Shown here piece after piece: positions 2,100 to 33,311 of a stretch of 36,174 nucleotides of DNA (within the stretch, counting starts at the first letter, position 1; every line of letters begins with the position of its first letter). The translations under genes were made by a program, and so were the position numbers. The notes under the pieces are model-generated. The model did no database searches. It was not told where the DNA came from and was given only the letters and a program-made list of their open reading frames with translations. The DNA is from Macrostomum lignano (taxonomy: Eukaryota): positions 1-36,174 of the forward strand of contig NIVC01003857.1 in NCBI GenBank assembly GCA_002269645.1, read 5' to 3'.

Positions 2100-3010
2100 A
2101 CTCGGTCGGGCTGTCAATATAGTTTCAGGAGGATTTGCTGGAGGTTCTTGCACTGCGGAAGATTCTGCTTAAATTCCGTCTCCGACAGCCGCATCTTCCC
2201 CTGGGCCGTGCAACTGATCAAGGTGGACCTTTGTACTGCAGGGCTGCCCCGGAGGGGGACACAGCGGGAAGGCGCAGACGCCCATTCCGCTAAAAGGGCC
2301 TTTGTACTGTCCATTGGTTAACATGACCAGCGAGGTGTTTCTTCCGGTCAGAAAAACAATCTTGGCCAGATCTGCGGTGTTGCCCGCCATGTCGTCACCG
2401 AAGACCCACGTGTGGCCCGGTAGAACAGCAGAAACCGATCCAAATTTTGTTGACTCAGTCCAGTGGCCTCTTCGGACGAACCTTTATGCGAGCTCGTTGC
2501 TTTGAGGGTTGTATGGCGGTGTTGTACATGCTGGCAACCATATTAAACTCTTCAGCCAATTTTGGTTGTCTCGGCAGATACAAAACTGCGTCCATTGTCA
2601 GTCACCAGAGTCCTGGGAATTCAGATCTGTGAAAAGTTCGTCGTTACTAGGACACCGCTGTGGCTGATTCCACTTGTCGTTAGTCAGATGATGGACCTCT
2701 AGGTGGCGCTTGAGAAAAAATCTACCAGCACAAATAAGTACTGCCCATTGATTGGTCCCGCGAAGTCTGCATGTACGATCCCACGGCTCTGTAGTCTGTG
2801 TGGCCAGGAACTGAGGTGATTCCTGTTGCTTTATTTTACCATCTTGCACTCTGTCCAAAGCTGCAGGCCACCATGTATTAAAGGCTTAGTCCTTTCCATG
2901 CCCAGGTGCGTCGAATGAGCTTCCTCCATGATGGTTTGTCTCAACGCACGCGGTGGAACTACTCTCAAACCTCTAATCAACAGACCGTCTTCCATAGTGA
3001 GTTCGGTGGA
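2100..3010 (-). pseudogene. Gypsy integrase remnant
   Basis: GLRVVPPRALRQTIMEEAHSTHLGMERTK (HHCC zinc-finger region) and TTPPYNPQSNELA*RFVR (the PQSNGxAER motif with a stop at the catalytic Glu), spread over several frames. Confidence 0.88.
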
Positions 3011-3299
3011 CACCATCTTGTACGCCCGTAGATCCTGGTGGTTGAAATTACTAGCTTGAATCGCTTCTTGGAGTCGTTTTAACTCCGGACATTGCTCCGA
3101 CTGAATCCGCAACGTACTGCTCAATAGTTGAAGTCGGGGAGCCAGCTCAACACTGCCAACGCTGAATGTTTGCCCCTGTCCGGGTCCAAGAAGCCAAGAC
3201 AATGCATCGGAATTCATCAGGCCAGATCTCTTATAGAAGTCATATGTCATCAGGAGAATGGCCCAGCGCTGCAGCCGTGCTGATACTCGTGCCAGTAAC

Positions 3300-3975
3300 T
3301 CTTGGTCTGGCCGTAAGTGAGTGGACGATGGTCGGTTATCAAAGTGAATTGCCTCCCTGCCAAGAACCTGTGACACCTTTGCACTGCCCATAAAATTACA
3401 AGTGCCTCTCGCTCGATCTAGGAATATTTGCGTTCCGCTTCTGAGAGTAGCTTGCTCACGTATAGGACTGGACGATCTTCCTGCATGAAAACTCCACCGA
3501 TACCTTTCTGTGATGCGTCACATTCTAGCTCGTAGCATAGTGTGCTTTGCTGGGTCGAAATTGGCTAGGGCCGACTATTCCGTTAGCATGGCCTTCAATT
3601 TTCGATAAGCGGCGATAAGCGGATAAGCGGCGATAAGCGATAAGCGATAAGCGGCTGCAGCTCAGCTATGTCGGTTGGAGCGGACATCTCCCTGAGGCCT
3701 AGCACCTTCTCCGCATCCGGGCGGATCAGACCGTCATCCAGTACGAAGCCTAGGAATCGCACCTTTCGCTGAGAGATTTGGCATTTCTTTTCGTTAATTT
3801 TGAGATTGTGCTGCTGAAGTCTCGCTCTCACCAGCGCTTCCCGTTGTTTCAACTGCTCTTTAGTCTGACCGCCAATGAGTATGTCATCAATACAGGCTAC
3901 GGCTCCTTTAATTCCCTGTACGACCTGTGGGATTATCTTTGAAATATGCTGGGCGCTGTAGTGATACCTTTATAA
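3300..3975 (-). pseudogene. Gypsy RT C-terminal half and RNase H remnant
   Basis: GITTAPSIFQ...VACIDDILIGG (YxDD mutated to CIDD), LKINEKKCQISQRKVRFLG, and CDASQKGIGGVFMQEDRPVLYVSKLLSEAERKYS. The protease and N-terminal RT are missing. A (GATAAGCG)n insertion lies at about 3603-3655. Confidence 0.88.
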
Positions 3976-4024: not shown

Positions 4025-4613
4025 TCAGGCGTAATGAACCTCAGCCTTGGCAACCGCATCCTTGAAGGTAAAGCTATGATGGTCCTTGACCAAAAGCTTG
4101 CCTACGATCTGTTGATCCATCAGACAGCAGATGAGTTGGTCCCGCAGGCGCTCATCCTTATTATCGAATTTGCATTTCTCCGCTGACGGCAGAAGCACTG
4201 ACTCTCTACGTGTGCGCGAGTACACTGTTGGAACGTGTACCGTTCAGCCAATACGAAGGTTGCCGGTACCAACAGTTCCTTTAAGGCAGCCTCCAACACC
4301 GTAGCTGACAATTGACTCGGCTTTGTTGGAGCCACCCGATCGGCTACTCGGTCATACAGGGCCGGAGACAGTTTCATGAGCAGCATCTGCGACTTTGTCT
4401 CGTTATCCACGCGGTAAAATTTTGCCGCAACTTTAAAGTCATACATTATCCATCGGGTGAAATTATTTCCGACGTCCAGCTGCTCGATCTCCATGGAGTT
4501 TTAACTGGAGTCTTAACAACAGAGACTGCTGCCTTGGTCGACTGGCCAGCCGGTGGACCTGCCACTGCCTTTGCAGGGGAGCCCAGTGTTTGTTCGCCTT
4601 AATTGCTTGCTCA
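4025..4613 (-). pseudogene. Gypsy gag remnant
   Basis: LEAALKELLVPATFVLAERYTFQQC followed, after a frameshift, by AEKCKFDNKDERLRDQLICCL, typical of metazoan Gypsy gag. Confidence 0.8.
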
Positions 4614-5271: not shown

Positions 5272-6146
5272 ATCAGCTTTAATGGCTTTTTATCAGCTTG
5301 ATTGGCTTTTTATCAGCTTGATTGGCTTTTTATCAGCTTGATTGGCTTTTTATCAGCTTGAATGGCTTTTATCAGCTTGATTGGCTTTTTATCAGCTTGA
5401 TTGACCTTCTATCAGCTTGATTGGCTTTTTATCAGCTTGATTGGCTTTTTATCAGCTTGATTGACCTTCTATCAGCTTGATTGGCTTTTTATCAGCTTGA
5501 TTGACCTTCTATCAGCTTGATTGGCTTTTTATCAGCTTGATTGACCTTCTATCAGCTTGATTGGCTTTTTATCAGCTTGATTGACCTTCTTTTAGCTTGA
5601 TTGGCTGATTATCAGCTTGATTGGCCTTTTATCCGCTGGATTGACCTTCTATCAGCTTGATTGGCTTTTTATCAGCTTGATAGGCTTCTTATCAGCTTGA
5701 TTGGCTTTTTATCAGCTTGATTGGCTTTTTATCAGCTTGATTGGTCTTTTATCAGCTTGATTGGTTTTCTATCAGCTTGATTGGCTTTTTATCAGCTTGA
5801 TAGGCTTTTTATCAGCTTGATTGGCCTTTTATTAGCTTGATTGGCCTTTTATCAGCTTGATTGGCCTTCTATCAGCTTGATTGACCTTCTATCAGCTTGA
5901 TTGGCTTTTTATCAGCTTGATTGGCTAGTTTATCAGCTTGATTGGTCTTTTATCAGCTTGATTGGTTTTCTATCAGCTTGATTGGCTTTTTATCAGCTTG
6001 ATTGGCCTTTTATCAGCTTGATTGACCTTCTATCAGCTTGATTGGCTTTTATCAGCTTGATTGGCTTTTTATCAGCTTGATTGGCTAGTTTATCAGCTTG
6101 ATTGGCTTTTTATCAGCTTGATTGGCTTTTTATTAGCCTGATTGGC
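5272..6146. repeat. 20-bp minisatellite (ATTGGCTTTTTATCAGCTTG), about 43 copies
   Basis: Directly visible tandem array with variant units (ATTGACCTTCT..., ATTGGCTAGTTT...). Confidence 0.98.
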
Positions 6147-6643: not shown

Positions 6644-7104
6644 GCCGACCTCTCATGGCCTCCCGTCTGCTGGCCTCTCATGGCCTACCGTCTGCCGACC
6701 TCTCATGGCCTACCGTCTGCCGGCCTCTCATGGCCTCCCGTCTGCTGGCCTCTCATGGCCTACCGTCTGCCGACCTCTCATGGCCTACCGTCTGCCGGCC
6801 TCTCATGGCCTCCCGTCTGCTGGCCTCACATGGCCTACCGTCTGCTGGCCTCTCATGGCCTTCCGTCTGCTGGCCTCTCATGGCCTACCGCCTGCCGGCC
6901 TCTCATGGCCTCCCGTCTGCTGGCCTCTCATGGCCTACCGTCTGCCGACCTCTCATGGCCTACCGTCTGCCGGCCTCTCATGGCCTCCCGTCTGCTGGCC
7001 TCACATGGCCTACCGTCTGCTGGCCTCTCATGGCCTCCCGTCTGCCGGCCTCTTATGGCTTCCCGTCTGCCGGCCTCTTATGGCCTCCCGTCTGCCGGCC
7101 TCTC
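6644..7104. repeat. 25-bp GC-rich minisatellite (GGCCTCTCATGGCCT[C/A]CCGTCTGC[T/C]), about 18 copies
   Basis: Directly visible tandem array. It accounts for the three overlapping plus-strand ORFs starting at 6627, 6655 and 6680. Confidence 0.97.
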
Positions 7105-7562
7105 AACTCTTCGCTTGATGTCTCTTTACTCGGGCTGCCGGTCTCGTCTTCGGAGTCGGTGTCGGCGGTCAATCGCACCGGTCTCTTTCTCTCGTCAATT
7201 TTCGTCACTCGCTTCGTCACATCTGCTGCAGTTGTTGTTGTTGCCAAACACCTTTCATCCACGGCTAGGGGCCTCCTTCCTGGCCCCCACGGCGGGTGAC
7301 CTCTCCACCACTCCCAGTACTTCATAGCTTCTTCCGGTTGTTCACAGACCGCCCGAAGGCCGTTGCAACACCACACCCTCCTCCACCCAGCTGCTGAAGT
7401 CTGTGCGCTACACTAGAATATGAAGCTGTGACCACATATTTACACATATGAGGCTCTGCTGCAGCACTTTTAACAGCAAAACTTTCTGCGTCAGTGCGGC
7501 CCTTAGGAAGTATATATTGTTTGAGAGAACACGGACACTGCGGACAATGTTTAAAGATTGCG

Positions 7563-7568
7563 TTTATT
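7563..7568 (-). terminator. Candidate polyadenylation signal of the WSC gene
   Basis: AATAAA on the minus strand about 80 nt after the TGA at 7648-7650. Confidence 0.5.
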
Positions 7569-7647
7569 TGTTAATCAGAATCATCATGTTTTTCAATGAT
7601 GTGTCTTTAAAAGTTAGTTACTTCTCTGATAAATAATAAATCAGGCC

Positions 7648-7925
7648 TCATAAAAGCTGCTCGTACACTACCATCGAGTCAAAACCACCGCAGATCTGCT
7701 TTGGATTTCCCGGACACCTGTAATTACATTTTCTTAATGACAATTGCGTCCCCATTATTGAATCACCACAGTAGCAATATGTTCCACTTATTACTCCAAA
7801 GTAAGGAGCAGTAAAGACACTGCAGTCCTTTCGGCAGCTCTCGATTGTCATTGACTCGCTGGATGACATGAAGAGGCTTAGGCTATCCTGCTTTTTGGAA
7901 TTTAAGTAGCAACCGAGCAGTTTAA
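7648..7925 (-). CDS. Terminal WSC-domain exon (cassette 1)
   Basis: Acceptor TTTCAG|TT AAA CTG CTC GGT TGC TAC. Encodes KLLGCY...[10 protein letters not shown]...[14 protein letters not shown]...[15 protein letters not shown]...VYEQLL* with the WSC Cys pattern, and ends in a stop instead of a donor. Confidence 0.9.
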
Positions 7926-9167
7926 CTGAAATTTGTATGCAAACTAATTAAACATTAAGCGAACAACAAATTAACGAACTGCTCATGCTTAATCTCATGA
8001 ACAAGTAAAGTGGAAGGGCGCTAGTCACTTTGTCAGTTGTAGAAGGGGTCGGTGTACCCAAAGATGAAACAGTGCTCAATATTTATATCATTTTCGTGTT
8101 GAGGTTGATGGTATTGATTGTACATCTGAGTATATCTACTCAGACTCAGATACTCAGATAAACTCAGACGATCGAAAGCTCACTCAGCTGAGTCAGTCAA
8201 CTACGATACTACTCAGCGCTCCGTGCAGCCAAGTTCGTCGCTTGTCTGCCGGACTCGTGGAATCCAAGAGCATGTTGAGTGAGCCGCATTATTTCTTAGA
8301 GGGCTGGAGACTCGTACTGTATTGTGTCTGCCTGGGGACGGGTCGATCCCAACGATGACGCGATCTTCTGCTCAGAGTTCAAAGTGGGTCCGGCCAGAAG
8401 ACATTGGTTCAATTTAGGAGGGAGAGTGAGATCCGTTTCGGCCATTGTCCCCACACCAACCCCTTTACCAAACATTCAGAAGGTTAAATAAAGCGTTTGC
8501 ACTATAAATACTACGAAGGAAATTATAGCTACTCGTATATATTGGTGGATTGAGGATGAACTTACAGTTCGGGTGCTCTGCAACAAGAGACAGCAATTTA
8601 GTCACTTTAAAATTGAATACAGCAATACTTTACAGTGGCTTAAAACAAAAGCCGGCAAGTCAGTGCAGAATGCTGGCTCTCTTCCTTATTATCTCCGCTA
8701 GGTTAGAGACATATCTAAAGAAAGATAGCTTGGGGTCGAACGTGACACTCAGAATTTTTAGTGTAGCGCTGGCAGGAGTTGTGTGCCGTTGATGTACATG
8801 TAGACACGTAGTTGCCGCGAGTACCTGCTCTTTCCCGGGCTAAATAGGGTGGCGGTACATTTCGAGGTTGAAATCTGTAGTTTATGCGACTCGAGAGCAG
8901 AAAAAAGTTAGGCTAGGTATAGTCGTTGAGCTTTTCTTCGAGAGAAATGCTGTTTGGGGACGAGGCGGACGCGGTTGAGGTCATCCGCGTAGATGATCAG
9001 ATTGGTCTTCGGCGTTGCTGTGGCTCTTGCTGTCATTGATGTTGCTTGCTGTTGCTGTTGCTTTTCTTCAATATTACTAGCAAGGTTTGCCCCAGTTGGG
9101 AGACAACAAAACATGAAAAGTAAAGGTTTGACTCGGCATCTCAGCAACTTTCTCCTTAAGCAATGCC

Positions 9168-9257
<90 letters not shown>

Positions 9258-12200
9258 GTTTGGCCTACATGTACATGAGGTTGTAGCTTAGTAGTTAAAG
9301 CGTCGGACTCATGACTTGAAGGTCGGGGGTTCGATTCTCGAGCGAGTCGGAACAATTTGTGTCCTTGAGCAAGACACTTAACTCTGCATTGCTTCAGTTC
9401 ACCCAGCTGTAAAATGAGTGCCAGCATTTATAGCTTGGGTAATTGAGAGTGTGTGCGTGACCCCCCAGTCCAGTCCTTGGACTGAACAGCCATACACAGC
9501 TATCAGATGCGCCGTGCAATAGCTGCGGCTGAGCAGTCGGTTGCACACATGTCCATTAGGGCAGGTGTAATAAATTATTATTGTTACTATTTATAGGCCT
9601 AGTAGCAACTCCCAGTTAAGCATTATTATCTCAGAAATCCTCTCGTCAGCATTGGCACCTCAGCAACTTCCCTGCGAACCTTCATTCACTGCTTCAGGCA
9701 CAAAACCATACGGAGACGGAGCACGAATTATAAAAAATCCTGAAAACCCAAGTTTGAATTCGACAATTAAAGGAGAATGAAAATTGATTTTTAGATTATA
9801 CTCACCAGCAGAGGCGGGCTGCTCGTACACAACCATTGTGATGTGACCACCGCAGATCTGCTTTGGATTTCCCGGACACCTGTAATCACACTTTTTCAAA
9901 GACAATTGTGCACTCATAATGAAATCACCGCAGTAGCAATGCGTTCCACTTATTACTCCAAAGTAGCGATCAGTAGTCACACTGCAGTCCTTTTGGCAGC
10001 TCTCGATTGTCATGGACTCGTTGGATGACTTGTAGCGGCGTAGGTTGGAACTCGTATCGTCGTAATGAAAGTAGCAGCCTTCCAGTTTAACTGCAAGGTT
10101 TTCATGCGAAACAATTAAACAAACTCATGGACAAGTAAAGTGCAAGGGCGCTATAACCACATTGCCAGTTAAAGTCGGTATCGGTGTACCCAAGGATGAA
10201 ACAGTGCACAATATTTATATGATTTGTGTGTTGTGGTTGTTGAGTGAGAGCAAGAGCCCAAAAGTGTGTTGAGTGAGCTGCGTTATTTCTTAGAGGGCTT
10301 GTAGAGACTTATTAAACCATACCGTAATGCCCTACTTAAAGTATTATTCAAAGAAAGTCAATTTATTCTAGCGAGCTAGAATGAGTCATATCTACTTTTA
10401 GGAACCATGCGCAAACAGAGTGACTCAGAACCCCACGTGGGACCAACATTGTTTGATCAAGGAACCGGATTCCAACAGCTGTATTTGCTTAACCCCATAT
10501 ATGGTAATGCTCAAGCATACGTGACAGCATAATCAAACATGAATGACCTAAGTAAATATCCGATCCCAAACCAGTTTTTATCCAAAATTTTGCCATAAAT
10601 ATAAGTGAAAATCCGAGTAAAAAATTCAGACTCAGAGCGGTCTCTAAGAAGACTCTGAAGGAACAAAGAAGAAGACCAATCTCTGAGGGACCACACTTGT
10701 ACAATTGGTAAGCGTTTACCGGATTCATTTCTTTGATTGTTAGTGATAGTAAGTTGAATTATTGAGTTTACGAGAGCCGTTTATTGTCGACACATTTGAG
10801 AAAGGCCTCCTTGTTTCCTAGGATATATTCCTAGAGGATTATTGATTTGATTTGAGTTATCCGTTACGTTTCGGACGTAACGAAGAAGACGCCCTTCAGG
10901 AGGACCTATCACAGAAACTTAGAGAATTCGATTGTTCATTAGGGCGCACGTTCTACTGTTAATTCCGAGCTCGAGGAGCGTCAAGAATTCTGATTCGCTC
11001 TTGTTTTTGGTAACGAGTCACCTAAGCCAAACCAAGACGTCTAAAAGCTACTAAAGGATCCGCTGCAGTAAGAGTTTTTTGATTTTGCATACACCCAGGC
11101 ACTTGTCCCCAGTGTCTAGAAGTGGGAGTTTTCGAGTCACTGATCACCACTAACTCTTCAGGCTGGAGATTCGTACTGTACTGTGTCTGCCTGGAGGCGT
11201 GTCGATCCCAACGAAGACGCGATCTTCCACTCAGAGTTCGAAGTGGGTCCGGCCAGACGACCGAAGCTACCTTGAGCTGGTCCTCCGAGATTAATTGGAT
11301 TAATTTAGGAGTGAGAGTGAGATCAGTTTCTGTCATTGTCCCAACACCAGTGTAAATTTACCGAACATTCAAAAGTTGAGTACAGCGTTGGCACTTTAAA
11401 TACCAACAAGAAATTATAAGCATATATTGGTGGGTTGATGATGAACTTACAGTTCGGGTGCTCTGCAACAGGAGAAAGAGGAGAAAGCAGTTTGAAATTG
11501 AAAAATGGAAAATCAGCAAAAGCTACGTCGTAGTTTGCATATATGTCAATAGCAGGTTTGGCTACTGCTCTATGTAAAGTGCTAAGACTTGGTGAAATTG
11601 CAGTTCGACTGTCAGTTTCGACTAAAAACTCCAGACTAAAGGCTGGATCCAGGCTTTATTACTAAAGGCTTTATTCAGTCGAATAAACGGCACAAAACTT
11701 TTATGTTGAGCTTCGTGTGAATTTGAATTTGAAGATGAGGCCCATTGCTTCTCGATACGTGTATGATCTTCATCTCTTTAATCTGTCAGCGTATTTAATA
11801 TTATTGATGTTGCTATTTTTGTTAGCGGTTCCTTCATTTAAATTCTCGCCAGAATAATAATAAAATCCGATTTGTTTAAACGCGCTGCACCCCATCTCAC
11901 TCTTGACTATAAATATAGAGGAGTCTCAATTGAGGAATATCAGAGGATCGGTGAACCGCACAGACTCTCAGATAAGGGTCGAATAACCGATTCAAGTGTT
12001 CAAAGAATCTTTCTCATTTGCCAAAATTGTAAAAATATTGCTCATCGGCTGGTTGAGGGAACCAGTTTGTGCAAGCGAATACGTAGTCTAAGGAACAGAT
12101 TGCGAAACAGCAAGAGAAGTGAAGACGCGTTATTCGCTAAGTTATAGGAAGAAAATACTCCAACATTCCTTTCGAAATTGAATCCACCAATGACGGGTCG

Positions 12201-15200
12201 TAAACTGACATAAGTCAATCCCCACAAAAGGAAAATGGGGAAGAGAAAAACAGGACAACCTCGATCCATTGACAACGCCACTCAGCACTCAATGCCACAA
12301 AGTATAGTCAACAACAGTGTCTTGCCGCTAGGGCAGTGTACTCTACCGGAACGATCGGTTATTCACGTGAAAGCTCAATGCTACTCGTAAAATAATAATT
12401 TGATTCCAGAGCTCAAGTATACTATAGAAATTGTGGAAAGACCCAGAGGCCCTACAACATTTTCTGCGAATGCAATCAATCATTGCCCCCCAGTTGGGGG
12501 AAAAATTCCGTATTTTCGTATTCCGTATATTCCGTAATTCCGTATTCCGTATTTTAAAGCTTCGACGACTGCCCTATGCTTTCTACAAGTAGACCCACGT
12601 AACTTGGCAAGCACCTGGTGAATGCTAACTGCTCTGCACGTGCATGATTAGCTCCAGATTGCTTCAGACTCAAACGTATACGGAGACAGATACAAAAGTA
12701 TGAAATCATGAAAACTAAACTTTAAAGTTTGATATCATTAAACACGACCATTAATTATAATATTCTCACCAGCAGAGGCTGCAGGGAGTATATCCGGCTG
12801 CTCGTACACCATGTACTCAGAACCACCGCAAATCTGCTTTAGATTTCCTGGACACCTGAAATTACATTCGTTTGAAGTTTGCTCTTTTCTTAGTGAATCC
12901 CCGCAATAGCATTCTGTTTTATTTGCGACTCCAAAGTAGCGATAAGTATAGCGACTGCAGTCCTTTTGGCAGCTCTCAATTGTCATTGACTCGCTGGATG
13001 AAATGCGGTGTTGTAGATTAGAACTTGTATCGTTACTAATGTAGCAACCTTGCAGCTTAACTGAAATTTTAATGCAAAGTATTAAGAATAAGAAAGCGAA
13101 TTGCTACTGCTTAAACTCATAAAGAATTAAAGTAGAAGGTCGCTACAGTCGCTAGTCGCATTGTCAGTTGTAGTCAGGATTGGTGCACCCAAGGGTGAAG
13201 CAGTGTACAATATTTGTATGATTTGTGTGTTGAGGTTGATAACATGGCCGTGGTGCGCAGAGTCTACTCAGACTCAGATACTCAGATAAACTCAGACGAT
13301 CGAGAGCTCACTCAGCTGAGTCAGTCAACTACGATACTACTCAGCGCTCCGTGCAGCCAAGTCTGTACGGACTCGTGGAATCCAATAGCATGTTGAGTGA
13401 GCTGCGGTATTTCTTAGAGGGCTGGAGATTCGTACTGTATTGTAATCCTGGGGACGGGTCGATCCCAACGAAGACGCAATCTTCTGCTCAGAGTTCGAAG
13501 TAGGTCCGGCCAGAGAACCTAAGACACTTTGATCTCTTCCTCTGAGGCTCATTGGGTCAATTAAGGATTGGAGAGTGAGGTCTGTTTCTGCCATTGTCCC
13601 AACACCAGTGTAAATTTACCCAACATTCAAAAGGTTGAGTTAAGCGTTTGCACTATAAATACTATGGAAGAAATTATAATTATATATTGGTGGATTGATG
13701 ATATACTTACAGTTCGGGTGCTCTGCAACAAGAGGCAGCAATTTAATCGCTCTAAAGTTAAGAATCGATAAAAGCTACATCAGTTTTTGCATACATGTCA
13801 ATAGCAGGTTGGCTACTGAGCTTAGTAAAGTGCTCGAGACTTTGTAAAATTACACTTTATCTTTACGAGGGTGTTAGAGTTCTTTGAGTCTTCTTAGTTT
13901 AATGGAGCTTCTAACTACGAGCGTAAGTTGCAATTTAAACGTGCCAGTGGGTTATCTCCCATCAAGATATGAATTTTCGTCTCCGCGTCCAAGACAATTG
14001 ATTGCTTTAATATGGCTGTCAAGGAGGCTCCGGCAAAGGACGCTCCCTGTGAAATCTTGTGCATGAGTTTCTCCGAGGAGTAGGAGGACGCTTTAAAGAA
14101 GAGGACTCCCTCGAGGACATTGATCAGACTCTCTCACTGGCATCGATCACCGGAGTAATACCCTCGTTGAGATCTCGTTGCGACACCTGGAAGGTCTACT
14201 GCGCCAGTCTCGAGAGGCAGCACTCCACAACTCGCGGCTCGTCAGGTCCGTTAGGCACGACACGCTCGCACAGTGCAAATCCTTTTGAGCCTGGATGGTA
14301 ACTATACTACGAGCTACCAGTCCCGAAGGATCGCTTAATCTACTTCTCTTCTCCACCGGCTTTCCGCAGGTTCCTAATACTGAGTGCGTGGTCGATGACC
14401 ACAGACCCAGCGATCGGCCCCCTTACTAACAGTGCGCCCTTCAGCTGCTTCAGATGGCGCCGGATTCGTTTAAACCGTTCAAATCGCTTGGGCCGACAAC
14501 ATCGCCCCTGAATTCTTCAGGAGGCGCTTAAGCGGTAAGCGGCCGTGACTATACGAGTATAATAACTCAAATATACGGTCCGCGAGATCATGCTATTTCT
14601 GCTATTTCTAAGCGCACAAGAACGCTATAGGGTATTCCATTTTTTAAAACCACAATGACTGCTCTATTGCAGTGAGCCACTACCACAGCTGTTAGGCGTC
14701 TCACACTACTGTCAGCAGTTTTCCTTGCCCTCGCCTTGGGTTGCTATCTGGCGCTGGGCAGCTTCCCTTCCCTTTTTGGTCTGCCTGTTTTCTGCCTCCA
14801 TATTTTTGCTTCGCGCTCTTGTCTGCAGTCGCGCTCTTGTCACTGGCATCTCTGCTGTGGTCTGCTCTTCGTTCGCTAAAGTCCAGAGGTCACTGGTGGT
14901 TTCATTGATGGCCCCGTCCGTTTTACCCTTGTTTATGTGAGCTATAGTCACATGACAAGCCTTGTTTTCCTGGAGTCTTAAAGTGACTGGTCCGTGGCAA
15001 AAATCACATACCCCGGAACCCATGCCTTCTGTAAGGTGGGCGGTGACGTCAGTTTCTGACAAATAGACACTATGTCACGCGGTCTTGCGCACAATACTCG
15101 TAGAGCAGAGGGTTTTCCAAGGCTATAAATACGGAACCCCCTCACGCTTGTTTCCAGTCAAGAAGTTTCTCTATTTTTTGTTTTTAGCTATTTCTAAGTT

Positions 15201-16742
15201 CTTGAGACCCGCACTTTTATAAGTGCCTGAATTCAAAGCCTGAATAACACCCAAATAAACTCAGACGCCCAAGTCTACCAAAGGCAAACTCGCCTTCCCA
15301 ATCACCCACTGAGCCCAGGAAGATCTGCTGACCAGACGCCTATGATCGTAAACTTGAAAATCTTCGTTGTTTTGTTTATTTCTCTCTTTCCAACGAGAAG
15401 CTCATCTCACCGAAGACTGAGACCTGAAGGAACTTGTGGCAGCGACTAACAACGCTGCTAGAAAGAGACCCGACCGCGAGCCGTAACGAAAGGCAGCCGT
15501 ATTAACTGTACTCACGCTAATGTTCTACAAGTACTACAAAGTTAATGACGGGAAGCGTCTGTACGTGAAAGGAGATTGTTAGTTTCACCTGTCAGACAAC
15601 ATACTCTCTGCAATAGATAAGAATAAGGTCGACGACAATTTCTTCCACTTTTTTCTTTTACTAATAATCTGACGAGTAGTGAGCTAGAGACTACCCTCTA
15701 TAAGCGAGCGAGGAAATGAGACAATGACACCATTCATAAATGAACAATTGAACGTAATAAATTATGGCCGGCATTCTTACCGGCAGAGGCTGTAACGAGT
15801 GTAGCGGGCTGCTCGTACACAACCATCGTGCGAATACCACCGCAAATCTGCTTTAGGTTTCCCGGACACCTGTAATTACATCTGTTTAAAGATGTTTTAT
15901 GAGTAATTTTTGAATTACCGCAGAAGCATTCTGTTCTAGCGACTCCAAAGTGGCGGAAGGTATAACGACTTCGGCAGCTCTTTTGGCAGCTCTCAATTGT
16001 CATTGACTCGCTGGTTCATATGCGGTATTTTAGATTCTCAACTACCTTACTGAGGTGAACGTAGCAACCTTGCAGTTTAACTGAAATTGTAATGCGAATA
16101 AGAAAGCGCACTGCTCATGCTCAAACTCATGGACAAGTAAAGTAGAAGGGAGCTACAGTCGCTAATCGCATTGTTAGTTGTAGTCGGGGTCGGTGCACCC
16201 AAGGGTGAAGCAGTGCACAATATTTGTATGATTTGTTTCTTAAGGTTAATGGCATAGGTGATGCGCAGAGTCTACTCAGACTCAGATACTCAGATAAACT
16301 CAGACGATCGAGAGCTCACTCAGCTGAGTCAGTCAACTACGATACTTCTCAGCGCTCCGTGCAACCAAGCCCGTCGCTCGCTTGCCTGTCGGACTCGTGG
16401 AATCCAAGAGCATGTTGAGTGAGCTGCGTTATTTTTTTAGAGGGCTGGAGATTCGTACTGTATTGTGTCTGCCTGGGGACGGGTCGATCCCAACGAAGAC
16501 GCGATCTTCCGCTCAGAGTTGGAAGTGGGTCCGGCCAGAGGACCGAAGGTACCTTGAGCTCTTGCTCTGACGCTCATTGGGTCAATTTGGGAGTGAGAGT
16601 GAGATCCGTTTCTGCCATTGTCCCAACACCAGTGTAGATTTACCGAACATTAAAAAGCTTGAGTAAAGCGTTTGCACTTAAATACCACAAATAAATTATA
16701 AATACAAGCGTGGATTGATGATGAACTTACAGTTCGGATGCT
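7648..16742 (-). CDS. Multi-exon gene for a tandem WSC-domain protein (4 microexon + WSC cassettes; 5' end not found)
   Basis: Joining 16742-16731, 16080-15781, 13722-13711, 13060-12770, 11462-11451, 10090-9806, 8577-8566 and 7925-7648 uses only AG/GT boundaries and keeps one frame, giving [EHPNFKL(Q/E/L)GCY...MTIESC..C...YFGV...C(Y/F)CG...C.(Y/F)RCPGN.KQICGG...VYEQ]x4. One TGA lies in the first WSC exon. Confidence 0.85.
8566..8577 (-). CDS. 12-nt microexon (cassette 1)
   Basis: cttgttgcag|AGCACCCGAACT|gtaagt. Confidence 0.85.
9167..9255. repeat. (CT)n microsatellite
   Basis: About 44 CT units. Confidence 0.98.
9279..9594 (+). mobile_element. tRNA-derived SINE with CORE-like domain
   Basis: A-box-like TAGCTTAGTAG and B-box GGTTCGATTC. 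Then GTGTCCTTGAGCAAGACACTTAAC...CAGCTGTAAAATG, which resembles the MIR CORE (GTGACCTTGGGCAAGTCACTTAAC...TCTGTAAAATGG). AT-rich (ATT)-like tail. Confidence 0.85.
9806..10090 (-). CDS. WSC-domain exon (cassette 2), 285 bp, phase 1-1
   Basis: ttgcag|TT AAA CTG GAA GGC TGC TAC ... GCC TCT GCT G|gtgagt. Open frame with an intact WSC Cys pattern. Confidence 0.92.
10300..11160. mobile_element. Solo LTR (861 bp) with 4-bp TSD GGCT
   Basis: TGTAGAG...CTCTTCA flanked by GGCT on both sides. It interrupts TTAGAGGGCTGGAG, which is intact in the other three cassettes. A second copy lies at 18020-18951. Confidence 0.9.
11451..11462 (-). CDS. 12-nt microexon (cassette 2)
   Basis: cctgttgcag|AGCACCCGAACT|gtaagt. 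Confidence 0.85.
12500..12555. repeat. (TTCCGTA)n-like short tandem repeat
   Basis: About six degenerate TTCCGTA(T) units. Confidence 0.8.
12770..13060 (-). CDS. WSC-domain exon (cassette 3), 291 bp, phase 1-1
   Basis: tttcag|TT AAG CTG CAA GGT TGC TAC ... GCC TCT GCT G|gtgaga. Open frame with intact Cys pattern. Confidence 0.92.
13711..13722 (-). CDS. 12-nt microexon (cassette 3)
   Basis: cttgttgcag|AGCACCCGAACT|gtaagt. Confidence 0.85.
15072..15488 (+). mobile_element. Possible LTR fragment
   Basis: Starts TGTCACG, has TATAAATA (about 15124) and AATAAA (about 15255), and ends near CGTAACG. No TSD found. Confidence 0.3.
15781..16080 (-). pseudogene. WSC-domain exon (cassette 4), 300 bp, phase 1-1, with an in-frame TGA
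   Basis: Splice sites intact (tttcag| and G|gtaaga). TGA at 16016-16018 aligns with Ser (TCA) in the other cassettes. Confidence 0.8.
16731..16742 (-). CDS. 12-nt microexon (cassette 4)
   Basis: cttgttgcag|AGCATCCGAACT|gtaagt. The single difference from the other copies is synonymous (CAC to CAT). Confidence 0.82.
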
Positions 16743-18019
16743 CTGCAACAAGAGAAAACAGTTTACTCGTGTGAAAATTAAAAATCAATAAATGCTACGT
16801 CAGAGTTTCGCATGCATGCCGATAGCAGGCTGGCTACTGAGCTCAGTAAGGTGCTCAAGCTCAAGACTTAGTGAAATTGCGCTTTATGTCGGCGAGGTCG
16901 TTAGAGTTCTTTGGGTATTTTTATATTAATAGAGCTTCTAAGTAGGTTGCTATGTAAACAGGTGCCGGTGGGTTATCTCCCATCAAGATGTGACTTTCCG
17001 TCTCGGATAGCGATCCTGTTGCAATGCACTGCAATCATTTTGACTAAAATCTTATGGCATATGGCAAAATGCCAACAACAAACGATCGAGCGTCACGAAG
17101 CGTTTTTGTTGACTTCTGCGTTCATTTTAGTGGATACGAGATGAGGTTGATTCTTTATTGATACATGCATACTGTATTCAGGAAATACACCTTTGATCTG
17201 ACCGCCGTATTTGTTTTGTTTTTTCCTGATGTCCTTCCTGCTGATCATTTTGTTTTATTGGATTACATACGCTCGTACTATAGCAATCTTTGCATCTCGT
17301 TGGGAGACAACAAAGCAAGGGATTATAACGAATTCTTTGAATAAAGAATACATGTAAAACGCCTTGTGCAGTGGCTGAGGGCGTGGTGTAGACCCACCCC
17401 CAGTCCTGCGTGGCTGAGCTCCACCCAAGGACCACAGTAGTGCAACAGGATGTAAAAATCAAAGCTCGTGTTTTTTGTGCAAAATTCATTAAAAATAGGA
17501 ATAAATCACTTTTAATCACAAAAATATTGATTACATTTGATCTAGGGCAGCGAAGATTACCATTTTTTTACTTAGCATGCGTGCCTAGCTATTGTATAGT
17601 TGTCCTAGCTTTGTTTTTTATACATGTATACCGGTAGTTGTCGTGAAAGTTTTATTTTTATACTGTTTTCTTATTTTTATATGCCCAAAGTTGTAACTAC
17701 TCACAAATGGCATTAGTTGAACTCTTTATTTTTTACTTGCATCAAGTATATTTGCAATGGAAACTTAAACCGCGGGACTCCGTGACATCTGCCAGCTCTT
17801 CATTTTCGTGGAGCTTCTTCGTTCTTGTCTCCTGCTATGGAGGGCGGACCCCCTGCAGCCTTTTGCAGGGCAGGTGGCTAGTGCTGGTGCCACACGGGTT
17901 CTCAATGACCGCTCCTTTGGGGAAGGGCTCTGGCGTTGGCTGTCAACCCGACCTGGCGCCTTTACACTAGCCCCCGCCCGCTGATCTTGCAGAGCGTGGG
18001 CTGGGGCCTGCCGGAACCT

Positions 18020-18951
18020 TGTAGAGAGCCGGAACTATACCGTGATGCCCTACTTAAAGTAATATTCTAAGAAAGTCAATTTATTCTAGAATGAGTCATA
18101 TCTATTTTTAGGAATCATGCGCCAACAGAGTGACTCAGAACCCCACGTGAGACCAACATTGTTTGATCAAGGAACCGGATTCCAACAGCTGTATTTGCTT
18201 AACCCCATATATGGTAATGCTCGAGCATACGTGACAGCTTAATCAAACATGAATGACCTAAGTAAATATCCGATCCCAAACCGGTTTTTCTCCAAAATTT
18301 TGCTATAAATAGCTCGTATAAGTGAAAATCCGAGTAAAAAATTCAGACTCAGAGCTGTCTCTAAGAAGACTCCGAAGGAACAAAGAAGAAGACCAATCTC
18401 TGAGGGACCACACTTGTCCAATTTGTAAGCGTTTACGTTCTTTGTTCTTCTTGTCGAGTTGTCTTTGTTCTTGATTCAGTTCTTTGATTGTTAGCGTTAA
18501 TAAGTTGATTAATTGAGTTTATGAGAGCCGTTTATTGTCGACACATTTGAGAAAGGCCTCCTTGTTTCCTGGGATATATTCCTAGAGGATTATTGATTTG
18601 ATTTGAGTTATCCGTTACGTTTCGGACGTAACGAAGAAGACGCCCTTCAGGAGGACCTATCACAGAAACTTAGAGAATTCGATTGTTCATTAGGGCGCAC
18701 GTTCTACTGTTAATTCCGAGCTCGAGGACCGTCAAGAAATTCTGATCGCTCTCGTCTTTGGTCGACCTACAGATAAAAGTCAAGGACTCCCGGAGGTAAC
18801 AAGTCACCTAAGCCAAACCAAGACGTCTACAAGCCACTAAAGGATCCGCTGCAGTAAGAGCTATTTGACTTTACCTATACCTAGGCACTTGTTCCCCAGT
18901 GTCTAGAAGTGGGAGTTTTTGAGTGACTGATCACCACTCTTAAACTCTTCA
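18020..18951 (+). mobile_element. Second copy of the 10300-11160 LTR, followed by a PBS-like TGG
   Basis: Same TGTAGAG...CTCTTCA termini and a near-identical core, with several indels. Followed by ac-TGGTGATCTCG. Flanks ACCT/ACTG do not form a TSD. Orientation is inferred only from the PBS-like motif. Confidence 0.8.
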
Positions 18952-19206
18952 ACTGGTGATCTCGTCCAGGCATATACCAGGCTAGATCGCTGAAAGCACT
19001 TTGAAACAAAGTCCATTGCGCAAATTTTACTGAACTTTTTATAAACAGCCATTGTTTGCATATAGACCCTTTGATCCTTTGCATACCGCTTTATACTTTT
19101 GTTAAATTCAGGAATACCCTAATTCAATTACTTTCTTTTGGTAAAGGCAACACAGACAGTTTCGCCCCGTGCCACTTTTCCTTTCTTCCTAAGTAAATAA
19201 GAGCTT

Positions 19207-19207
<1 letters not shown>

Positions 19208-19243
<36 letters not shown>
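19208..19243. repeat. (CA)n microsatellite
   Basis: Visible CA run. Confidence 0.95.
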
Positions 19244-19246
<3 letters not shown>

Positions 19247-19768
19247 ACGCACCGGGCACTTGTTGGTACGGTATACAATGGTGGGCACTTATTTTGCAAT
19301 TTTTTTGACACACAAAAACACACATACACACAGTGCAATGACCTATTAAGTATTTTTAGCATTTAAATGATGAAAAAAAGCATACATTGAAATAAAAAAG
19401 CACGTCCCATACTAATAGTATGATCTATTGAAAGTGAAGTAATAGCGTAACATCGTGTACCTACGAGCTATATTGTCCTCAGTCCAGCGAATTCAGCATT
19501 ACTTGAAATACAAAAGGCTTCGTTAAAGCCAATCCACATGAAGGAAAAACTAGTTACAAGCAGTCTATTTACCTTTACCTTTACTAATACGCTATAATGC
19601 TGTACGCAATATGCCTGACTAATATGAATAAAAAATTCAATTACACTTGCGCTTAGGAAAAAACCTAAAATTGACAGTGAAACTGAAAAACTGAAACGCA
19701 GAGATTAGTTAAGCAGATTAAACAACAAATTCCGGTCGAGTGAGAAAACAGGAGTCTCGTTATTTAGA

Positions 19769-22700
19769 GCACTCTGGCATCCAGCATTACGCTCATAGAC
19801 TATTAGCTGCTCTCCTGAGTTCGAAGCTGACAGGTCCGTTGCAGCGGCATCGATTGAGTCGACTGCCAATTTAGTCAATGGGTTTCGTTTCTTCTTTTCA
19901 CTGGAACCTGTGGTGGGATTAGCAAAAGATCGATTTCGCATATCTATTTAGTGATTTCAAGGACGACAAAATCATTCTTCTCTGCATGTCTGCTCCAGAA
20001 GATGCTAGTTTGCTTGCAGCTTTCTGTAGGAGCATTCTACTTTAGTAAAGTATACCCATTCTAAAATAAGCTGTTTTTTATATGTCCCAACAAGTCTCTG
20101 TGCAGTGTGTCATCCGTTTGCCCATCAATTTGTTCTGGAGCCCTTTATTAATTGAGTTCTTTAGGTGACTTAACAAATGCGGAAAAAACTAGACACACAC
20201 ACACAGTGGCCCAACACTTCGTGTCCCAATAATTGCTAGGAAAAATGCACTGCAGTGTTTAAGCATCTCCTCTGAGGGGCCCTTGCATGCATAGCTATAG
20301 AATCTGCTAAGACCCGATCTGAGAGTTAAAAGTACAAAAAGTTATAACGCTTCTAGACACGAAAACGAATCCAGCCACAGCATGAACTAACCTTTCATTG
20401 AAGCTTCTGCTTAAGACTTTGATGCTGTGAAGCATTCTGGCATCTAGCATTACTCTCGTAGACTATTAGCTGCTCTCCTGAGTTCGAAGCTGACAGGTCC
20501 GTTGCAGCGGCATCGATTGAGTCGACTGCCAATTTAGTCAATGGGTTTCGTTTCTTCTTTTCACTGGAACCTGTGGTGGGATTAGCAAAAGATCGATTTC
20601 GCATATCTTTTAGTGATTTCAAGGACGACAAAATCATTCTTCTCTGCATGTCTGCTCCAGAAGATGCTAGTTTGCTTGCAGCTTTCTGTAGGAGCATTCT
20701 ACTTTAGTAAAGTATACCCATTCTAAAATAAGCTGTTTTTATATGTCCCAACAAGTCTCTGTGCAGTGTGTCATCCGTTTGCCCATCAATTTGTTCTGGA
20801 GCCCTTTATTAATTGAGTTCTTTAGGTGACTTAACAAATGCGGAAAAAACTAGACACACACACACAGTGGCCCAACACTTCGTGTCCCAATAATTGCTAG
20901 GAAAAATGCACTGCAGTGTTTAAGCATCTCCTCTGAGGGGCCCTTGCATGCATAGCTATAGAATCTGCTAAGACCCGATCTGAGAGTTAAAAGTACAAAA
21001 AGTTATAACGCTTCTAGACACGAAAACGAATGCAGCCACAGCATGAACTAACCTTTCATTGAAGCTTCTGCTTAAGACTTTGATGCTGTGAAGCATTCTG
21101 GCATCTAGCATTACTCTCGTAGACTATTAGCTGCTCTCCTGAGTTCGAAGCTGACAGGTCCGTTGCAGCGGCATCGATTGAGTCGACTGCCAATTTAGTC
21201 AATGGGTTTCGTTTCTTCTTTTCACTGGAACCTGTGGTGGGATTAGCAAAAGATCGATTTCGCATATCTATTTAGTGATTTCAAGGACGACAAAATCATT
21301 CTTCTCTGCATGTCTGCTCCAGAAGATGCTAGTTTGCTTGCAGCTTTCTGTAGGAGCATTCTACTTTAGTAGTAAAGTATACCCATTCTAAAATAAGCTG
21401 TTTTTATATGTCCCAACAAGTCTCTGTGCAGTGTGTCATCCGTTTGCCCATCAATTTGTTCTGGAGCCCTTTATTAATTGAGTTCTTTAGGTGACTTAAC
21501 AAATGCGGAAAAAACTAGACACAACACACAGTGGCCCAACACTTCGTGTCCCAATAATTGCTAGGAAAAATGCACTGCAGTGTTTAAGCATCTCCTCTGA
21601 GGGGCCCTTGCATGCATAGCTATAGAATCTGCTAAGACCCGATCTGAGAGTTAAAAGTACAAAAAGTTATAACGCTTCTAGACACGAAAACGAATCCAGC
21701 CACAGCATGAACTAACCTTTCATTGAAGCTTCTGCTTAAGACTTTGATGCTGTGAAGCATTCTGGCATCTAGCATTACTCTCGTAGTCTATTAGCTGCTC
21801 TCCTGAGTTCGAAGCTGACAGGTCCGTTGCAGCGGCATCGATTGAGTCGACTGCCAATTTAGTCAATGGGTTTCGTTTCTTCTTTTCACTGGAACCTGTG
21901 GTGGGATTAGCAAAAGATCGATTTCGCATATCTATTTAGTGATTTCAAGGACGACAAAATCATTCTTCTCTGCATGTCTGCTCCAGAAGATGCTAGTTTG
22001 CTTGCAGCTTTCTGTAGGAGCATTCTACTTTAGAGTAAAGTATACCCATTCTAAAATAAGCTGTTTTTATATGTCCCAACAAGTCTCTGTGCAGTGTGTC
22101 ATCCGTTTGCCCATCAATTTGTTCTGGAGCCCTTTATTAATTGAGTTCTTTAGGTGACTTAACAAATGCGGAAAAAACTAGACACACACACACAGTGGCC
22201 CAACACTTCGTGTCCCAATAATTGCTAGGAAAAATGCAATGCAGTGTTTAAGCATCTCCTCTGAGGGGCCCTTGCATGCATAGCTATAGAATCTGCTAAG
22301 ACCCGATCTGAGAGTTAAAAGTACAAAAAGTTATAACGCTTCTAGACACGAAAACGAATCCAGCCACAGCATGAACTAACCTTTCATTGAAGCTTCTGCT
22401 TAAGACTTTGATGCTGTGAAGCATTCTGGCATCTAGCATTACTCTCGTAGACTATTAGCTGCTCTCCTGAGTTCGAAGCTGACAGGTCCGTTGCAGCGGC
22501 ATCGATTGAGTCGACTGCCAATTTAGTCAATGGGTTTCGTTTCTTCTTTTCACTGGAACCTGTGGTGGGATTAGCAAAAGATCGATTTCGCATATCTTTT
22601 AGTGATTTCAAGGACGACAAAATCATTCTTCTCTGCATGTCTGCTCCAGAAGATGCTAGTTTGCTTGCAGCTTTCTGTAGGAGCATTCTACTTTAGTAAA

Positions 22701-32797: not shown

Positions 32798-32801
<4 letters not shown>

Positions 32802-32833
<32 letters not shown>
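32802..32833. repeat. (CA)n microsatellite
   Basis: Visible CA run. Confidence 0.95.
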
Positions 32834-32835
<2 letters not shown>

Positions 32836-33311
32836 TACACCCCAGTGAAAGCCTCTGTGTGGTCACTGAGAGAGGCAAACAGCAGGGTAAGAGAGAGAGA
32901 GAGACCAACCCGCATTCACCCCCTGTTGCATGGGCAGAACAGGTGGATACTTGTAATATGCTGAAAGGCTGGTAGCACAGCCCAACATTGTCATAGAGCT
33001 CTCTTTCGCTGATAGTTCATCTGCTTTTGCGTGTCTCGATCATAGGAATATTGGCAATATTATTCTTCCCAATACACCGAACCCACCAGATCCCATGGCA
33101 GTCCACAGAGAGATTTGTTCAGCTGGATTGGGATAACCCGAACCCATTTCGGCAATATTGCTATTGTTTCAGCTAAAATAAGTAGGTTTGCACTATTTTT
33201 TTTGCCTTGATATAGCTACATGTAGATATTGTTGAACCAAGCCATACGAAAAGTAGTGTGATATGAAATTTGAAGTGAATTGCAACAGTCAATCGAAGTA
33301 TATTCCTAGAG

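Follow-up and report, generated by a model that had tools for sequence, protein, structure and literature searches.

In the micro-exon genes (MEGs) of schistosomes, the coding sequence is for the most part made up of numerous distinct symmetric microexons of up to about 36 nt, which are used combinatorially. A distinct principle of assembly is found in the phase-1 'exon-shuffling' modules of extracellular proteins, where a domain is confined to a single symmetric 1-1 exon that is expanded in tandem, and the genes of the MHC combine homogenised introns with divergent exons. WSC folds, which bind carbohydrate in other proteins, are shared by yeast Wsc1, Kremen1, WSCD1/2 and proteins of the 'fungistatic metabolite' type of fungi and oyster. 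The system closest to the locus investigated here was described in the model hermaphrodite Macrostomum lignano itself, where the transcripts Mlig-pro1 to Mlig-pro76 are limited to the prostate (PMC5977470) and where a shared Mlig prefix denotes transcripts that were clustered at 95% identity (PMC5730564). Knock-down of Mlig-pro46 lowered offensive sperm competitiveness P2 (p =.0035 unadjusted,.06 adjusted), and knock-down of Mlig-pro63 lowered the 'suck' behaviour of the partner (10.1101/734301). Many of the Mlig-pro transcripts were found to encode WSC proteins.

The window analysed in this study, a stretch of 36,174 nt of M. lignano DNA, contains on its minus strand four tandem cassettes, each composed of a candidate microexon of 12 nt, an intron and a WSC exon of 278-300 nt (Table 1). 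All 16 splice sites are canonical, with the microexons embedded as ..ttgcag/AGCAYCCGAACT/gtaagt and the WSC exons as ..cag/TTAA...CTG/gtragw (slashes mark exon borders). Each junction is in phase 1 and in frame, with a spliced reading of ASA-E-HPN-F-KL.GCY, and any number of cassettes would thus preserve the frame. The coordinates, the splice sites and the translation of the exons bear out the preliminary description of this architecture, including its introns of about 650 bp prior to the insertion of a transposable element, where the insertion is by its similarity to a second segment of the window a dispersed repeat. The polyadenylation signal does follow the terminal exon, but the earlier statement that only the last exon carries a stop is incorrect: W4 is interrupted by an in-frame TGA at a position occupied by TCA (Ser) in the other cassettes and in a paralogue with 86% identity (P0001). 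In the unspliced sequence, the region 5' of the WSC exons lacks an ATG and is closed by in-frame stops at a distance of no more than about 10-25 codons. As W4, W3 and W2 moreover end without a stop, these exons cannot stand alone and require splicing. Together with the existence of transcripts covering about three WSC domains and with the 771-nt amplicon of Mlig-pro46, which extends over several exons, this supports the view of a modular gene in which symmetric phase-1 cassettes supply multiple WSC domains. The locus therein resembles classical exon-shuffling modules, from which it differs by the additional 12-nt exon in the duplicated unit. One Val codon is missing in W3.

Table 1. Features of the WSC locus and its surroundings, ordered along the minus strand (positions refer to the window).
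Feature	Position	Strand	Description
Satellite	19768-31609		about 12 kb, upstream of the cassettes
TE-like repeat	18033-18951		upstream of the cassettes
Stretch 5' of m4	16743-16960	-	about 200 nt, homologous to the stretch 5' of m3 (13723-13935)
Microexon candidate m4	16731-16742	-	AGCATCCGAACT; flanks ctcttgttgcag/ and /gtaagt
Intron m4 to W4	16081-16730	-	650 nt
WSC exon W4	15781-16080	-	300 nt, phase 1-1, in-frame TGA at 16016-16018
Microexon candidate m3	13711-13722	-	AGCACCCGAACT
Intron m3 to W3	13061-13710	-	650 nt, homologue of the intron m4 to W4
WSC exon W3	12770-13060	-	291 nt, phase 1-1, open, 8 Cys
Microexon candidate m2	11451-11462	-	AGCACCCGAACT
Intron m2 to W2	10091-11450	-	1360 nt, interrupted homologue of the intron m4 to W4
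Dispersed-repeat (TE-like) insertion in intron m2 to W2	10315-11160	.	about 846 nt, 86% identical to 18033-18951
WSC exon W2	9806-10090	-	285 nt, phase 1-1, open, 8 Cys
Microexon candidate m1	8566-8577	-	AGCACCCGAACT
Intron m1 to W1	7926-8565	-	640 nt, homologue of the intron m4 to W4
Terminal WSC exon W1	7648-7925	-	278 nt including the TAA stop at 7648-7650
AATAAA polyadenylation signal	7563-7568	-	80 nt 3' of the W1 stop

The assignment of the encoded domains, for which a search of the spliced product with the Pfam model had been suggested as a check, is confirmed by scores far above the cut-off: the product of W3, W2 and W1 matches the WSC family (PF01822) in three stretches with an E-value of 1.9e-50 and 169.4 bits (gathering score 27.8 bits), and W4 matches it with 2e-14 and 54 bits. 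Eight conserved cysteines are retained in the translations of all four exons. The fold was compared on an AF2 model of P0001 (pLDDT 81), which stands in for the product of the window and whose best match is the domain of yeast Wsc1 (7pz2, TM 0.84, rmsd 1.8 A), with a further match to Kremen1 (E about 4e-7); judged from this paralogue model, the fold of the family is WSC/PAN-like. The HMM match, the eight cysteines and the predicted fold are thus common to the locus and to the broader WSC family, and an oyster protein (P0003) shares the arrangement of WSC domains in tandem arrays. What differs is that the product of the locus contains no transmembrane or enzymatic partner domain, and that its tissue context is the male accessory gland. 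The oyster gene (L001) was uninformative as a comparison of architecture, since its WSC repeats seem to be divided between two or more exons, whereas in M. lignano each domain occupies a single exon. Neither did tblastn detect further WSC remnants elsewhere in the window, nor did open reading frames in the long introns match any Pfam family.

The relationship to studied genes is defined by published RNAi and ISH primers, of which the reverse primers for Mlig-pro49, Mlig-pro63 and Mlig-pro46 match W1, W4 and W2 exactly. For Mlig-pro49, the reverse primer is located at 7665-7686 and the forward primer, with three mismatches, at 7897-7919, also within W1, and the resulting amplicon of 255 nt equals the reported length. 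For Mlig-pro63, the reverse primer at 15809-15828 combines with a forward primer at 16161-16181 (one mismatch), which is located inside the intron between m4 and W4, to an amplicon of 373 nt compared to 370 nt reported. In case of Mlig-pro46, the reverse primer is found at 9936-9959 and the forward primer shows four mismatches to the window. The three fragments map to one cluster, Mlig021499 (members.g3,.g4 and.g8/.g10), whose numbering up to.g10 indicates a multi-copy gene. The matched transcripts are prostate-limited seminal-fluid candidates (PMC5977470, PMC6953679), which places the function in seminal fluid and not in immunity, adhesion or mucus as had been proposed initially. The closest matches in UniProt are the M. 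lignano proteins A0A1I8G5V8 and A0A1I8G441 with 86-87% identity, and corresponding segments of the UniProt paralogues differ from the window by only one or two residues. By these matches, the region is assigned to the cluster Mlig021499 as a copy of a prostate-gland gene that has been studied before. It shares with this gene exact reverse-primer sites, amplicon sizes and WSC domains. In contrast, one to four mismatches in the forward primers, the TGA in W4 and the missing 5' exon suggest a paralogous, allelic or defective copy, which is not demonstrably the expressed one.

We thus consider it likely that the region constitutes one genomic copy of a prostate gene encoding a secreted WSC chain (Mlig021499), in which cassettes of about 1.2 kb are arrayed in tandem and linked by microexons, the copy itself being probably defective. 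Such a minus-strand gene would have originated from tandem duplication of a unit comprising the 12-nt exon, the 650-nt intron and the WSC exon. In the mature mRNA, WSC domains would most likely be joined by a microexon-encoded linker (..ASA-EHPNF-KL.GCY..). If the window copy is expressed in the same way as the matching transcripts, the protein would be made in prostate gland cells and passed on in the ejaculate, where the WSC fold and the published RNAi phenotypes suggest that it may act through glycans that it binds on sperm or inside the mating partner.

The use of the microexons in this gene was approached with a scan for sites consisting of a pyrimidine tract, YAG, 6-51 nt and GTRAGT, with a length that is a multiple of three and open in phase 1. 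On both strands of the window it returned exclusively m1-m4, compared to 0.47 such sites expected per 72 kb in shuffled sequence. The only substitution among the four is a synonymous CAC>CAT (His) in m4, and their splice sites (ttgttgcag/gtaagt) surpass the sites of the WSC exons in strength. The block around the microexon forms the best-conserved window of 30 columns in the cassette unit, with 28 of 30 positions invariant, but the adjoining intron is conserved to nearly the same extent (27 of 30), and conservation does thus not single out the microexon. A further indication comes from the amplicon of Mlig-pro46, which was reported with 771 nt and for which the window gives 765 nt with and 741 nt without microexons. 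With microexons included, it would be exactly 771 nt if the middle exon had 297 nt as in P0001, and, on the basis of paralogue exon lengths, this product appears to fit inclusion better than omission; the listed length of the transcript labelled 16008.2 (555 nt) is inconsistent with it. Database proteins returned by homology searches do not carry the EHPNF linker: a second search, started from P0004, yielded no proteins other than P0001 and P0004 itself, and an exhaustive representative search with P0001 found 4197 WSC relatives, none of them closer than P0004 or informative on the linker, and a look-up found no contig record encoding P0001. The junctions that would distinguish the possibilities in transcripts are GCCTCTGCTGAGCACCCGAACTTTAAACTG, GCTG/AGCACCCGAACT/TTAAA or GCTGAGCACCCGAACTTTAAA for an included microexon, GCCTCTGCTG/TTAAACTG for a direct connection of two WSC exons and GCCTCTGCTGTTAAACTG for a skipped microexon. 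Recursive splicing was dismissed as the end of the upstream exon followed by the start of the microexon does not regenerate a GT donor. Taken together, inclusion of the microexons in the mRNA is plausible from the sequence.

If instead the WSC exons were spliced directly, with gene and function unchanged, the 12-nt element would be a conserved pseudo-exon, a decoy or part of a homogenised intron. This scenario draws on the junction ASA-V-KL displayed by three UniProt models (A0A1I8G5V8, A0A1I8G441 and A0A1I8H2M3), on the preserved frame upon skipping, the lack of EHPNF in database proteins and the similar conservation of the neighbouring intron. Gene predictors, however, routinely miss exons of 12 nt, and the three models are clearly incomplete, since they start inside a WSC exon without a signal peptide, one of them also lacking a cysteine. 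The strength of the microexon splice sites, the low number of such sites expected by chance and the 771-nt amplicon, which could then be reached only with exons of about 310 nt, outside the observed range of 278-300 nt, also speak against direct splicing, which we regard as unlikely. Much less probable is the initial interpretation, which saw in the product a lectin of immunity, adhesion or mucus and ascribed its diversification to combinatorial splicing of microexons in the manner of MEGs. Its attraction lies in the symmetric phase-1 exons that would allow skipping of any cassette in frame, in the listed transcript sub-forms (16008.1/.2/.3 and 38600.1/.2) and in the carbohydrate binding known for the fold; the flatworm origin, the presumably secreted product and the frame-preserving 12-nt length of microexons in phase 1-1 are indeed reminiscent of MEGs. 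The resemblance is nevertheless superficial, since the microexons account for only 4% of the coding region (4 x 12 = 48 of about 1,200 nt) and repeat one and the same linker between large domain exons. Since a single peptide is specified by all four of them, including them does not make the protein more diverse in sequence. The prostate-limited expression of the matching transcripts and a homology search, in which no resemblance to MEG proteins showed up, also count against the initial interpretation. Inclusion or skipping of a microexon would change only a fixed linker of four residues.

A different partition of the locus, in which every cassette is transcribed separately from a promoter within the conserved 'intron' and in which pro49, pro63 and pro46 are separate genes, is hardly credible. 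The forward primer of Mlig-pro63 binds 81-101 nt before the W4 acceptor and its amplicon is colinear with the genome across this intron sequence, the transcripts RNA815_39357 (Mlig-pro63) and RNA815_38600.1 (513 and 522 nt) contain one WSC domain each, and the intron is unusually conserved, as might be expected for separate units. Such units would, however, lack an in-frame ATG or signal peptide in front of any WSC exon, with stops located just upstream, and W4, W3 and W2 would end without a stop or a polyadenylation signal. The three fragments fall into one cluster of 95% identity, and a multi-WSC transcript is represented by RNA815_16008.1 (1062 nt), where a blastx alignment of 292 residues corresponds to about three domains. 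Fragments and contigs with retained introns are common when highly expressed, repetitive genes are assembled de novo. A further concern relates to the integrity of the copy, which is probably incomplete or defective in light of the nonsense codon in its first cassette and the fact that no signal-peptide exon was recognisable in the window. On the gene strand, scans of 7000-20500 and of 16743-36174 outside the satellite detected no hydrophobic exon starting with ATG and followed by a usable phase-1 donor, and such an exon may be located beyond the window; a weak candidate at 12269 was discarded due to its poor donors. Since the stretch 5' of m4 is homologous to internal sequence, cassette 4 appears as a copy of an internal cassette and not as the natural start of a gene. 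These features, the TE-like repeat and the satellite directly upstream and the many near-identical gene copies in M. lignano could also describe a dead, 5'-truncated pseudogene array, which would be a decaying duplicate of a functional Mlig021499 gene that was cut from its promoter and signal-peptide exon by repeats and satellite. This possibility is real although not the one we favour, because W3, W2 and W1 have remained open with eight cysteines despite an exon divergence of 21-30% between cassettes, all splice sites and the polyadenylation signal are intact, three published primers match exactly and the symmetric W4 cassette could be skipped.

A second pronounced feature of the array concerns the relation between its introns and exons. 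Between cassettes, the introns are 82-89% identical compared to 70-79% for the exons, a contrast that is reflected in Fisher p-values of 3e-7 to 0.04 in five of the six cassette pairs. Exon divergence is concentrated mainly in four loop segments. For the WSC exons, we obtained dS values of 0.39-0.61 and dN values of 0.21-0.35, resulting in dN/dS ratios of 0.40-0.76. With ratios below 1 and an exon dS that is about threefold the intron distance, accelerated evolution of the exons by positive selection alone was rejected, and homogenisation of the introns or constraint explains the pattern better. The sequence comparison thus suggests that introns have been homogenised next to domain exons that diverged: recombination or gene conversion among cassettes might keep the former similar, whereas the latter remain different, mainly in their loops. 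MHC duplicates show the same relation, although there the contrast is between alleles or loci and here between repeats of one gene. The conserved intron does not appear to host a known snoRNA or other non-coding RNA, as the whole window gave no match in Rfam and no tRNA in ARAGORN, and the frame of open reading frames inside the intron is not conserved between cassettes. It contains a block rich in TGACTCA/ACTCAG.

Neither the cassette and microexon anatomy nor the contrast between introns and exons is described in the literature on Mlig-pro genes that was consulted for comparison. In its widest form, our interpretation would hold that the microexons are real and part of the duplication unit, that a protein of sexual conflict is assembled from cassettes of linker microexon and domain exon, whose number varies by gene copy and perhaps isoform, that selection keeps the domain exons different while recombination homogenises the introns, and that the TGACTCA/ACTCAG-rich intron might also be repeated as an element regulating splicing or prostate-specific expression. 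This combination is doubtful as a whole. The microexons and the intron-exon contrast, if they hold, would offer a compact example of the diversification of reproductive proteins by cassette duplication, and RNAi or ISH probes derived from one cassette would be expected to cross-react with others, with one published probe covering intron sequence. While no new class of biology is opened by the locus, our analysis ties a window of bare genomic sequence to the seminal-fluid genes Mlig-pro46, -49 and -63, which have been tested functionally. It also suggests that public protein models of this WSC family are wrong in detail, with absent linker microexons, truncated N-termini and apparently collapsed cassettes. 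In this respect, P0001 resembles a mosaic of W4/W3 and W2/W1, which might point to unequal crossing-over; as this protein is devoid of 'DYRC' and one cysteine, a collapse in the assembly would explain it equally well, and no conclusion is drawn from it.

The gene occupies the minus strand of the window and is transcribed in the order m4-W4-m3-W3-m2-W2-m1-W1, where W1-W4 are exons encoding WSC domains and m1-m4 candidate microexons, each forming a cassette with the following intron and WSC exon. All four candidates share the context ..ttgttgcag/AGCAYCCGAACT/gtaagt, and the WSC exons are bordered by ..cag/ on the acceptor and /gtragw on the donor side. Phase 1 is found at every junction and the spliced frame reads ..ASA-E-HPN-F-KL.GCY.., as the preliminary description had proposed, with a poly(A) signal (AATAAA) 80 nt past the stop of W1. 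The Pfam WSC model recognizes three domains in the spliced W3-W2-W1 product (E 1.9e-50) and W4 by itself (2e-14). The modular WSC gene of that description is real and correctly delineated. The introns leading from microexon to WSC exon measure 650, 650, 1360 and 640 nt, the long one in cassette 2 carrying an insertion (10315-11160) that was rightly attributed to a transposable element, since it is 86% identical to 18033-18951 in the same window. Both copies of this dispersed repeat (~850-930 bp) have the same orientation, and neither contains clear terminal inverted repeats. In the intron between W2 and m1, a (CT)44 microsatellite is followed by a tRNA-like stretch of SINE appearance, with motifs resembling A and B boxes (together 9167-9400), in which ARAGORN calls no tRNA.

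Exons of the WSC gene and matches of published primers
Feature	Coordinates	Strand	Details
m4, microexon candidate	16731-16742	minus	12 nt
W4, WSC exon	15781-16080	minus	300 nt, in-frame TGA at 16016-16018
m3, microexon candidate	13711-13722	minus	12 nt
W3, WSC exon	12770-13060	minus	291 nt
m2, microexon candidate	11451-11462	minus	12 nt
W2, WSC exon	9806-10090	minus	285 nt
m1, microexon candidate	8566-8577	minus	12 nt
W1, terminal WSC exon	7648-7925	minus	278 nt, TAA at 7648-7650
Mlig-pro49 primers	reverse exact, W1 7665-7686; forward 7897-7919, 3 mismatches		255 nt in window, 255 nt reported
Mlig-pro63 primers	reverse exact, W4 15809-15828; forward 16161-16181, 1 mismatch		373 nt colinear, 370 nt reported
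Mlig-pro46 primers	reverse exact, W2 9936-9959; forward 4 mismatches at W4/W3 starts		771 nt reported

Membership in the WSC family is reflected in the HMM, the cysteine pattern and the predicted fold, the latter taken from the model of the paralogue A0A1I8G5V8, which resembles most closely the Wsc1 domain of yeast (7pz2, TM 0.84) and next Kremen1. The gene shares the textbook phase-1 design of one domain per symmetric exon, to which the linker microexon candidate is an addition; this linker is absent from annotation and constitutes a plausible prediction. The locus is not a micro-exon gene of the schistosome type, to which it had been likened: microexons would account for only 4% of its coding sequence, and as one and the same peptide is specified by all four, they add no combinatorial sequence diversity.

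The family to which this WSC gene belongs has been described before, including its function. The closest database matches are the Macrostomum lignano UniProt entries A0A1I8G5V8 and A0A1I8G441 (86-87% identity) and A0A1I8H2M3 (48%). Compared segment-wise, just one or two residues separate A0A1I8G5V8 from W3 or W2, which indicates a paralogous or allelic copy from the same or a very closely related species. Its model is a mosaic, with a W4-type start and W3-type rest followed by a W2-type start and W1-type end, lacking 'DYRC' and one cysteine, and results either from cassettes having crossed over unequally or from collapse of the assembly. Among the 76 prostate-limited transcripts described as seminal-fluid candidates (Mlig-pro1 to -pro76; Weber et al. 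2018, PMC5977470), WSC proteins are numerous (Table S1, PMC5977470), and published primers (PMC6953679) for three of them match the window. These three belong to one Mlig_3_7 cluster (Mlig021499.g3,.g4,.g8/.g10), where a common prefix denotes clustering at 95% identity (PMC5730564). Knock-down of Mlig-pro46 is reported to make sperm less competitive in the offensive role (p =.0035 before and.06 after adjustment) and that of Mlig-pro63 to reduce 'suck' behaviour by the partner (10.1101/734301). These findings place the gene in the context of seminal fluid and sexual conflict, and not of immunity, adhesion or mucus as initially suggested.

Read unspliced, each WSC exon meets in-frame stops 10-25 codons upstream without an ATG, while W4, W3 and W2 reach their donors without a stop (for the TGA in W4, see below); the exons thus cannot be free-standing ORFs. 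That the cassettes would nevertheless belong to separate genes or mRNAs is suggested by the Mlig-pro63 forward primer, which is located 81-101 nt into the 'intron' 5' of W4 and defines an amplicon colinear with the genome. However, upstream of W4 the reading frame is closed and offers no start codon. We therefore take this contig for a piece of pre-mRNA, or of a transcript with a retained intron, from a repetitive gene with very high expression, and not for a separate mRNA. With the dsRNA/ISH forward primer residing in intron sequence, the probe and contig RNA815_39357 therefore contain unspliced sequence. A single gene is favoured by multi-WSC transcripts such as RNA815_16008.1 (1062 nt, 292-aa alignment) and by the Mlig-pro46 amplicon, which must span two full cassette boundaries before a W2-type exon, in agreement with the order W4-W3-W2. 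Within this gene, the WSC exons might be spliced straight together, as in the direct ASA-V-KL joint of the models A0A1I8G5V8, A0A1I8G441 and A0A1I8H2M3; EHPNF is found in none of the proteins of the searched databases, and the 300 nt of intron next to the microexon are almost as conserved (27/30 columns) as the block of splice site and microexon (28/30 invariant). The UniProt models are poor witnesses though, as they start within a WSC exon without signal peptide and one has lost a cysteine. Inclusion is favoured by the fact that, when the four cassettes are aligned, no other stretch of 30 columns is as well conserved as the splice-site and microexon block, in which the only substitution is synonymous (CAC>CAT), and that the candidates have stronger splice sites than the WSC exons. 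A scan of both strands of the entire window for a pyrimidine tract, YAG, an insert of 6-51 nt (length divisible by three, phase 1 open) and GTRAGT retrieved m1-m4 and no other site. Shuffled sequence yields 0.47 such sites per 72 kb, or ~0.01 when only the gene strand of one ancestral 1-2 kb intron is considered. From the window, the Mlig-pro46 amplicon should measure 765 nt if two microexons are included and 741 nt if they are not; a middle exon of 297 nt, as in A0A1I8G5V8, together with microexons yields exactly the reported length, whereas their omission requires exons of ~310 nt compared to the observed 278-300 nt, an arithmetic that relies on an unseen paralogue and a transcript label inconsistent with the product length. 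We thus consider it probable that the candidate microexons are included in the mRNA.

Contrary to the claim that only the last exon carries a stop, W4 contains a TGA at a position that encodes Ser in its sister cassettes and in the closest paralogue. Nowhere upstream on the gene strand within the window was an exon for a signal peptide found that ends in a phase-1 donor. Together with the nonsense codon, this suggests that the copy may be a 5'-truncated pseudogene, although W3 to W1, the poly(A) signal and 16/16 splice sites are intact. Alternatively, the first exon may be located beyond the window and the symmetric W4 cassette skipped. The 200 nt 5' of m4 share homology with the intron 5' of m3, which is internal to the gene; cassette 4 therefore looks internal rather than like a gene start. 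Directly upstream of the gene follow the second dispersed-repeat copy and a 12-kb satellite (19768-31609), in which a 663-bp unit is repeated 17.9 times head to tail with 98.4-100% identity.

A further interesting trait of the gene is the contrast between conserved introns and divergent exons. In comparisons among the cassettes, identity is 82-89% for the intron from microexon to WSC exon and only 70-79% for the WSC exons, a difference that is significant in 5/6 cassette pairs. In the exons, dS (0.39-0.61) and dN (0.21-0.35) are each greater than the distance between introns (~0.12-0.21), with dN/dS of 0.40-0.76, and the differences cluster in four segments between conserved Cys motifs, which are mostly loops in the predicted model. 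Because synonymous divergence is likewise raised, positive selection alone is disfavoured as cause; a likelier cause is homogenisation of the introns by recombination or gene conversion, with the domain exons being kept different, or a constraint on the intron itself. Invariant columns rise sharply at the microexon acceptor from 38% upstream to 74-85% downstream. The most similar block of cassettes 4 and 3 (16258-16374 and 13250-13366, 97% identical), whose counterpart in cassette 1 (8122-8238) is 88-91% identical to both and which is deleted in cassette 2, contains ACTCAG/TGAGT repeats including TGACTCA, and possibly serves in regulation or splicing, or represents a repeat that has been homogenised.

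Just 3' of the gene, two minisatellites extend over 5272-6146 (20-bp unit, 43.8 copies) and 6644-7105 (25-bp unit, 18.5 copies), latter of which gives rise to long spurious ORFs. The ORFs at 2831-3391 and 4120-4494, both on the minus strand, resemble the H2C2 domain of retroelement integrases and DUF7083 weakly, with scores below threshold, and are likely degraded LTR-retrotransposon remnants. On the plus strand, 33879-34610 is open for 243 aa with two cadherin repeats (Pfam Cadherin, 2.2e-20), and probably belongs, as an exon, to a cadherin or protocadherin gene unrelated to the WSC gene and encoded opposite to it.
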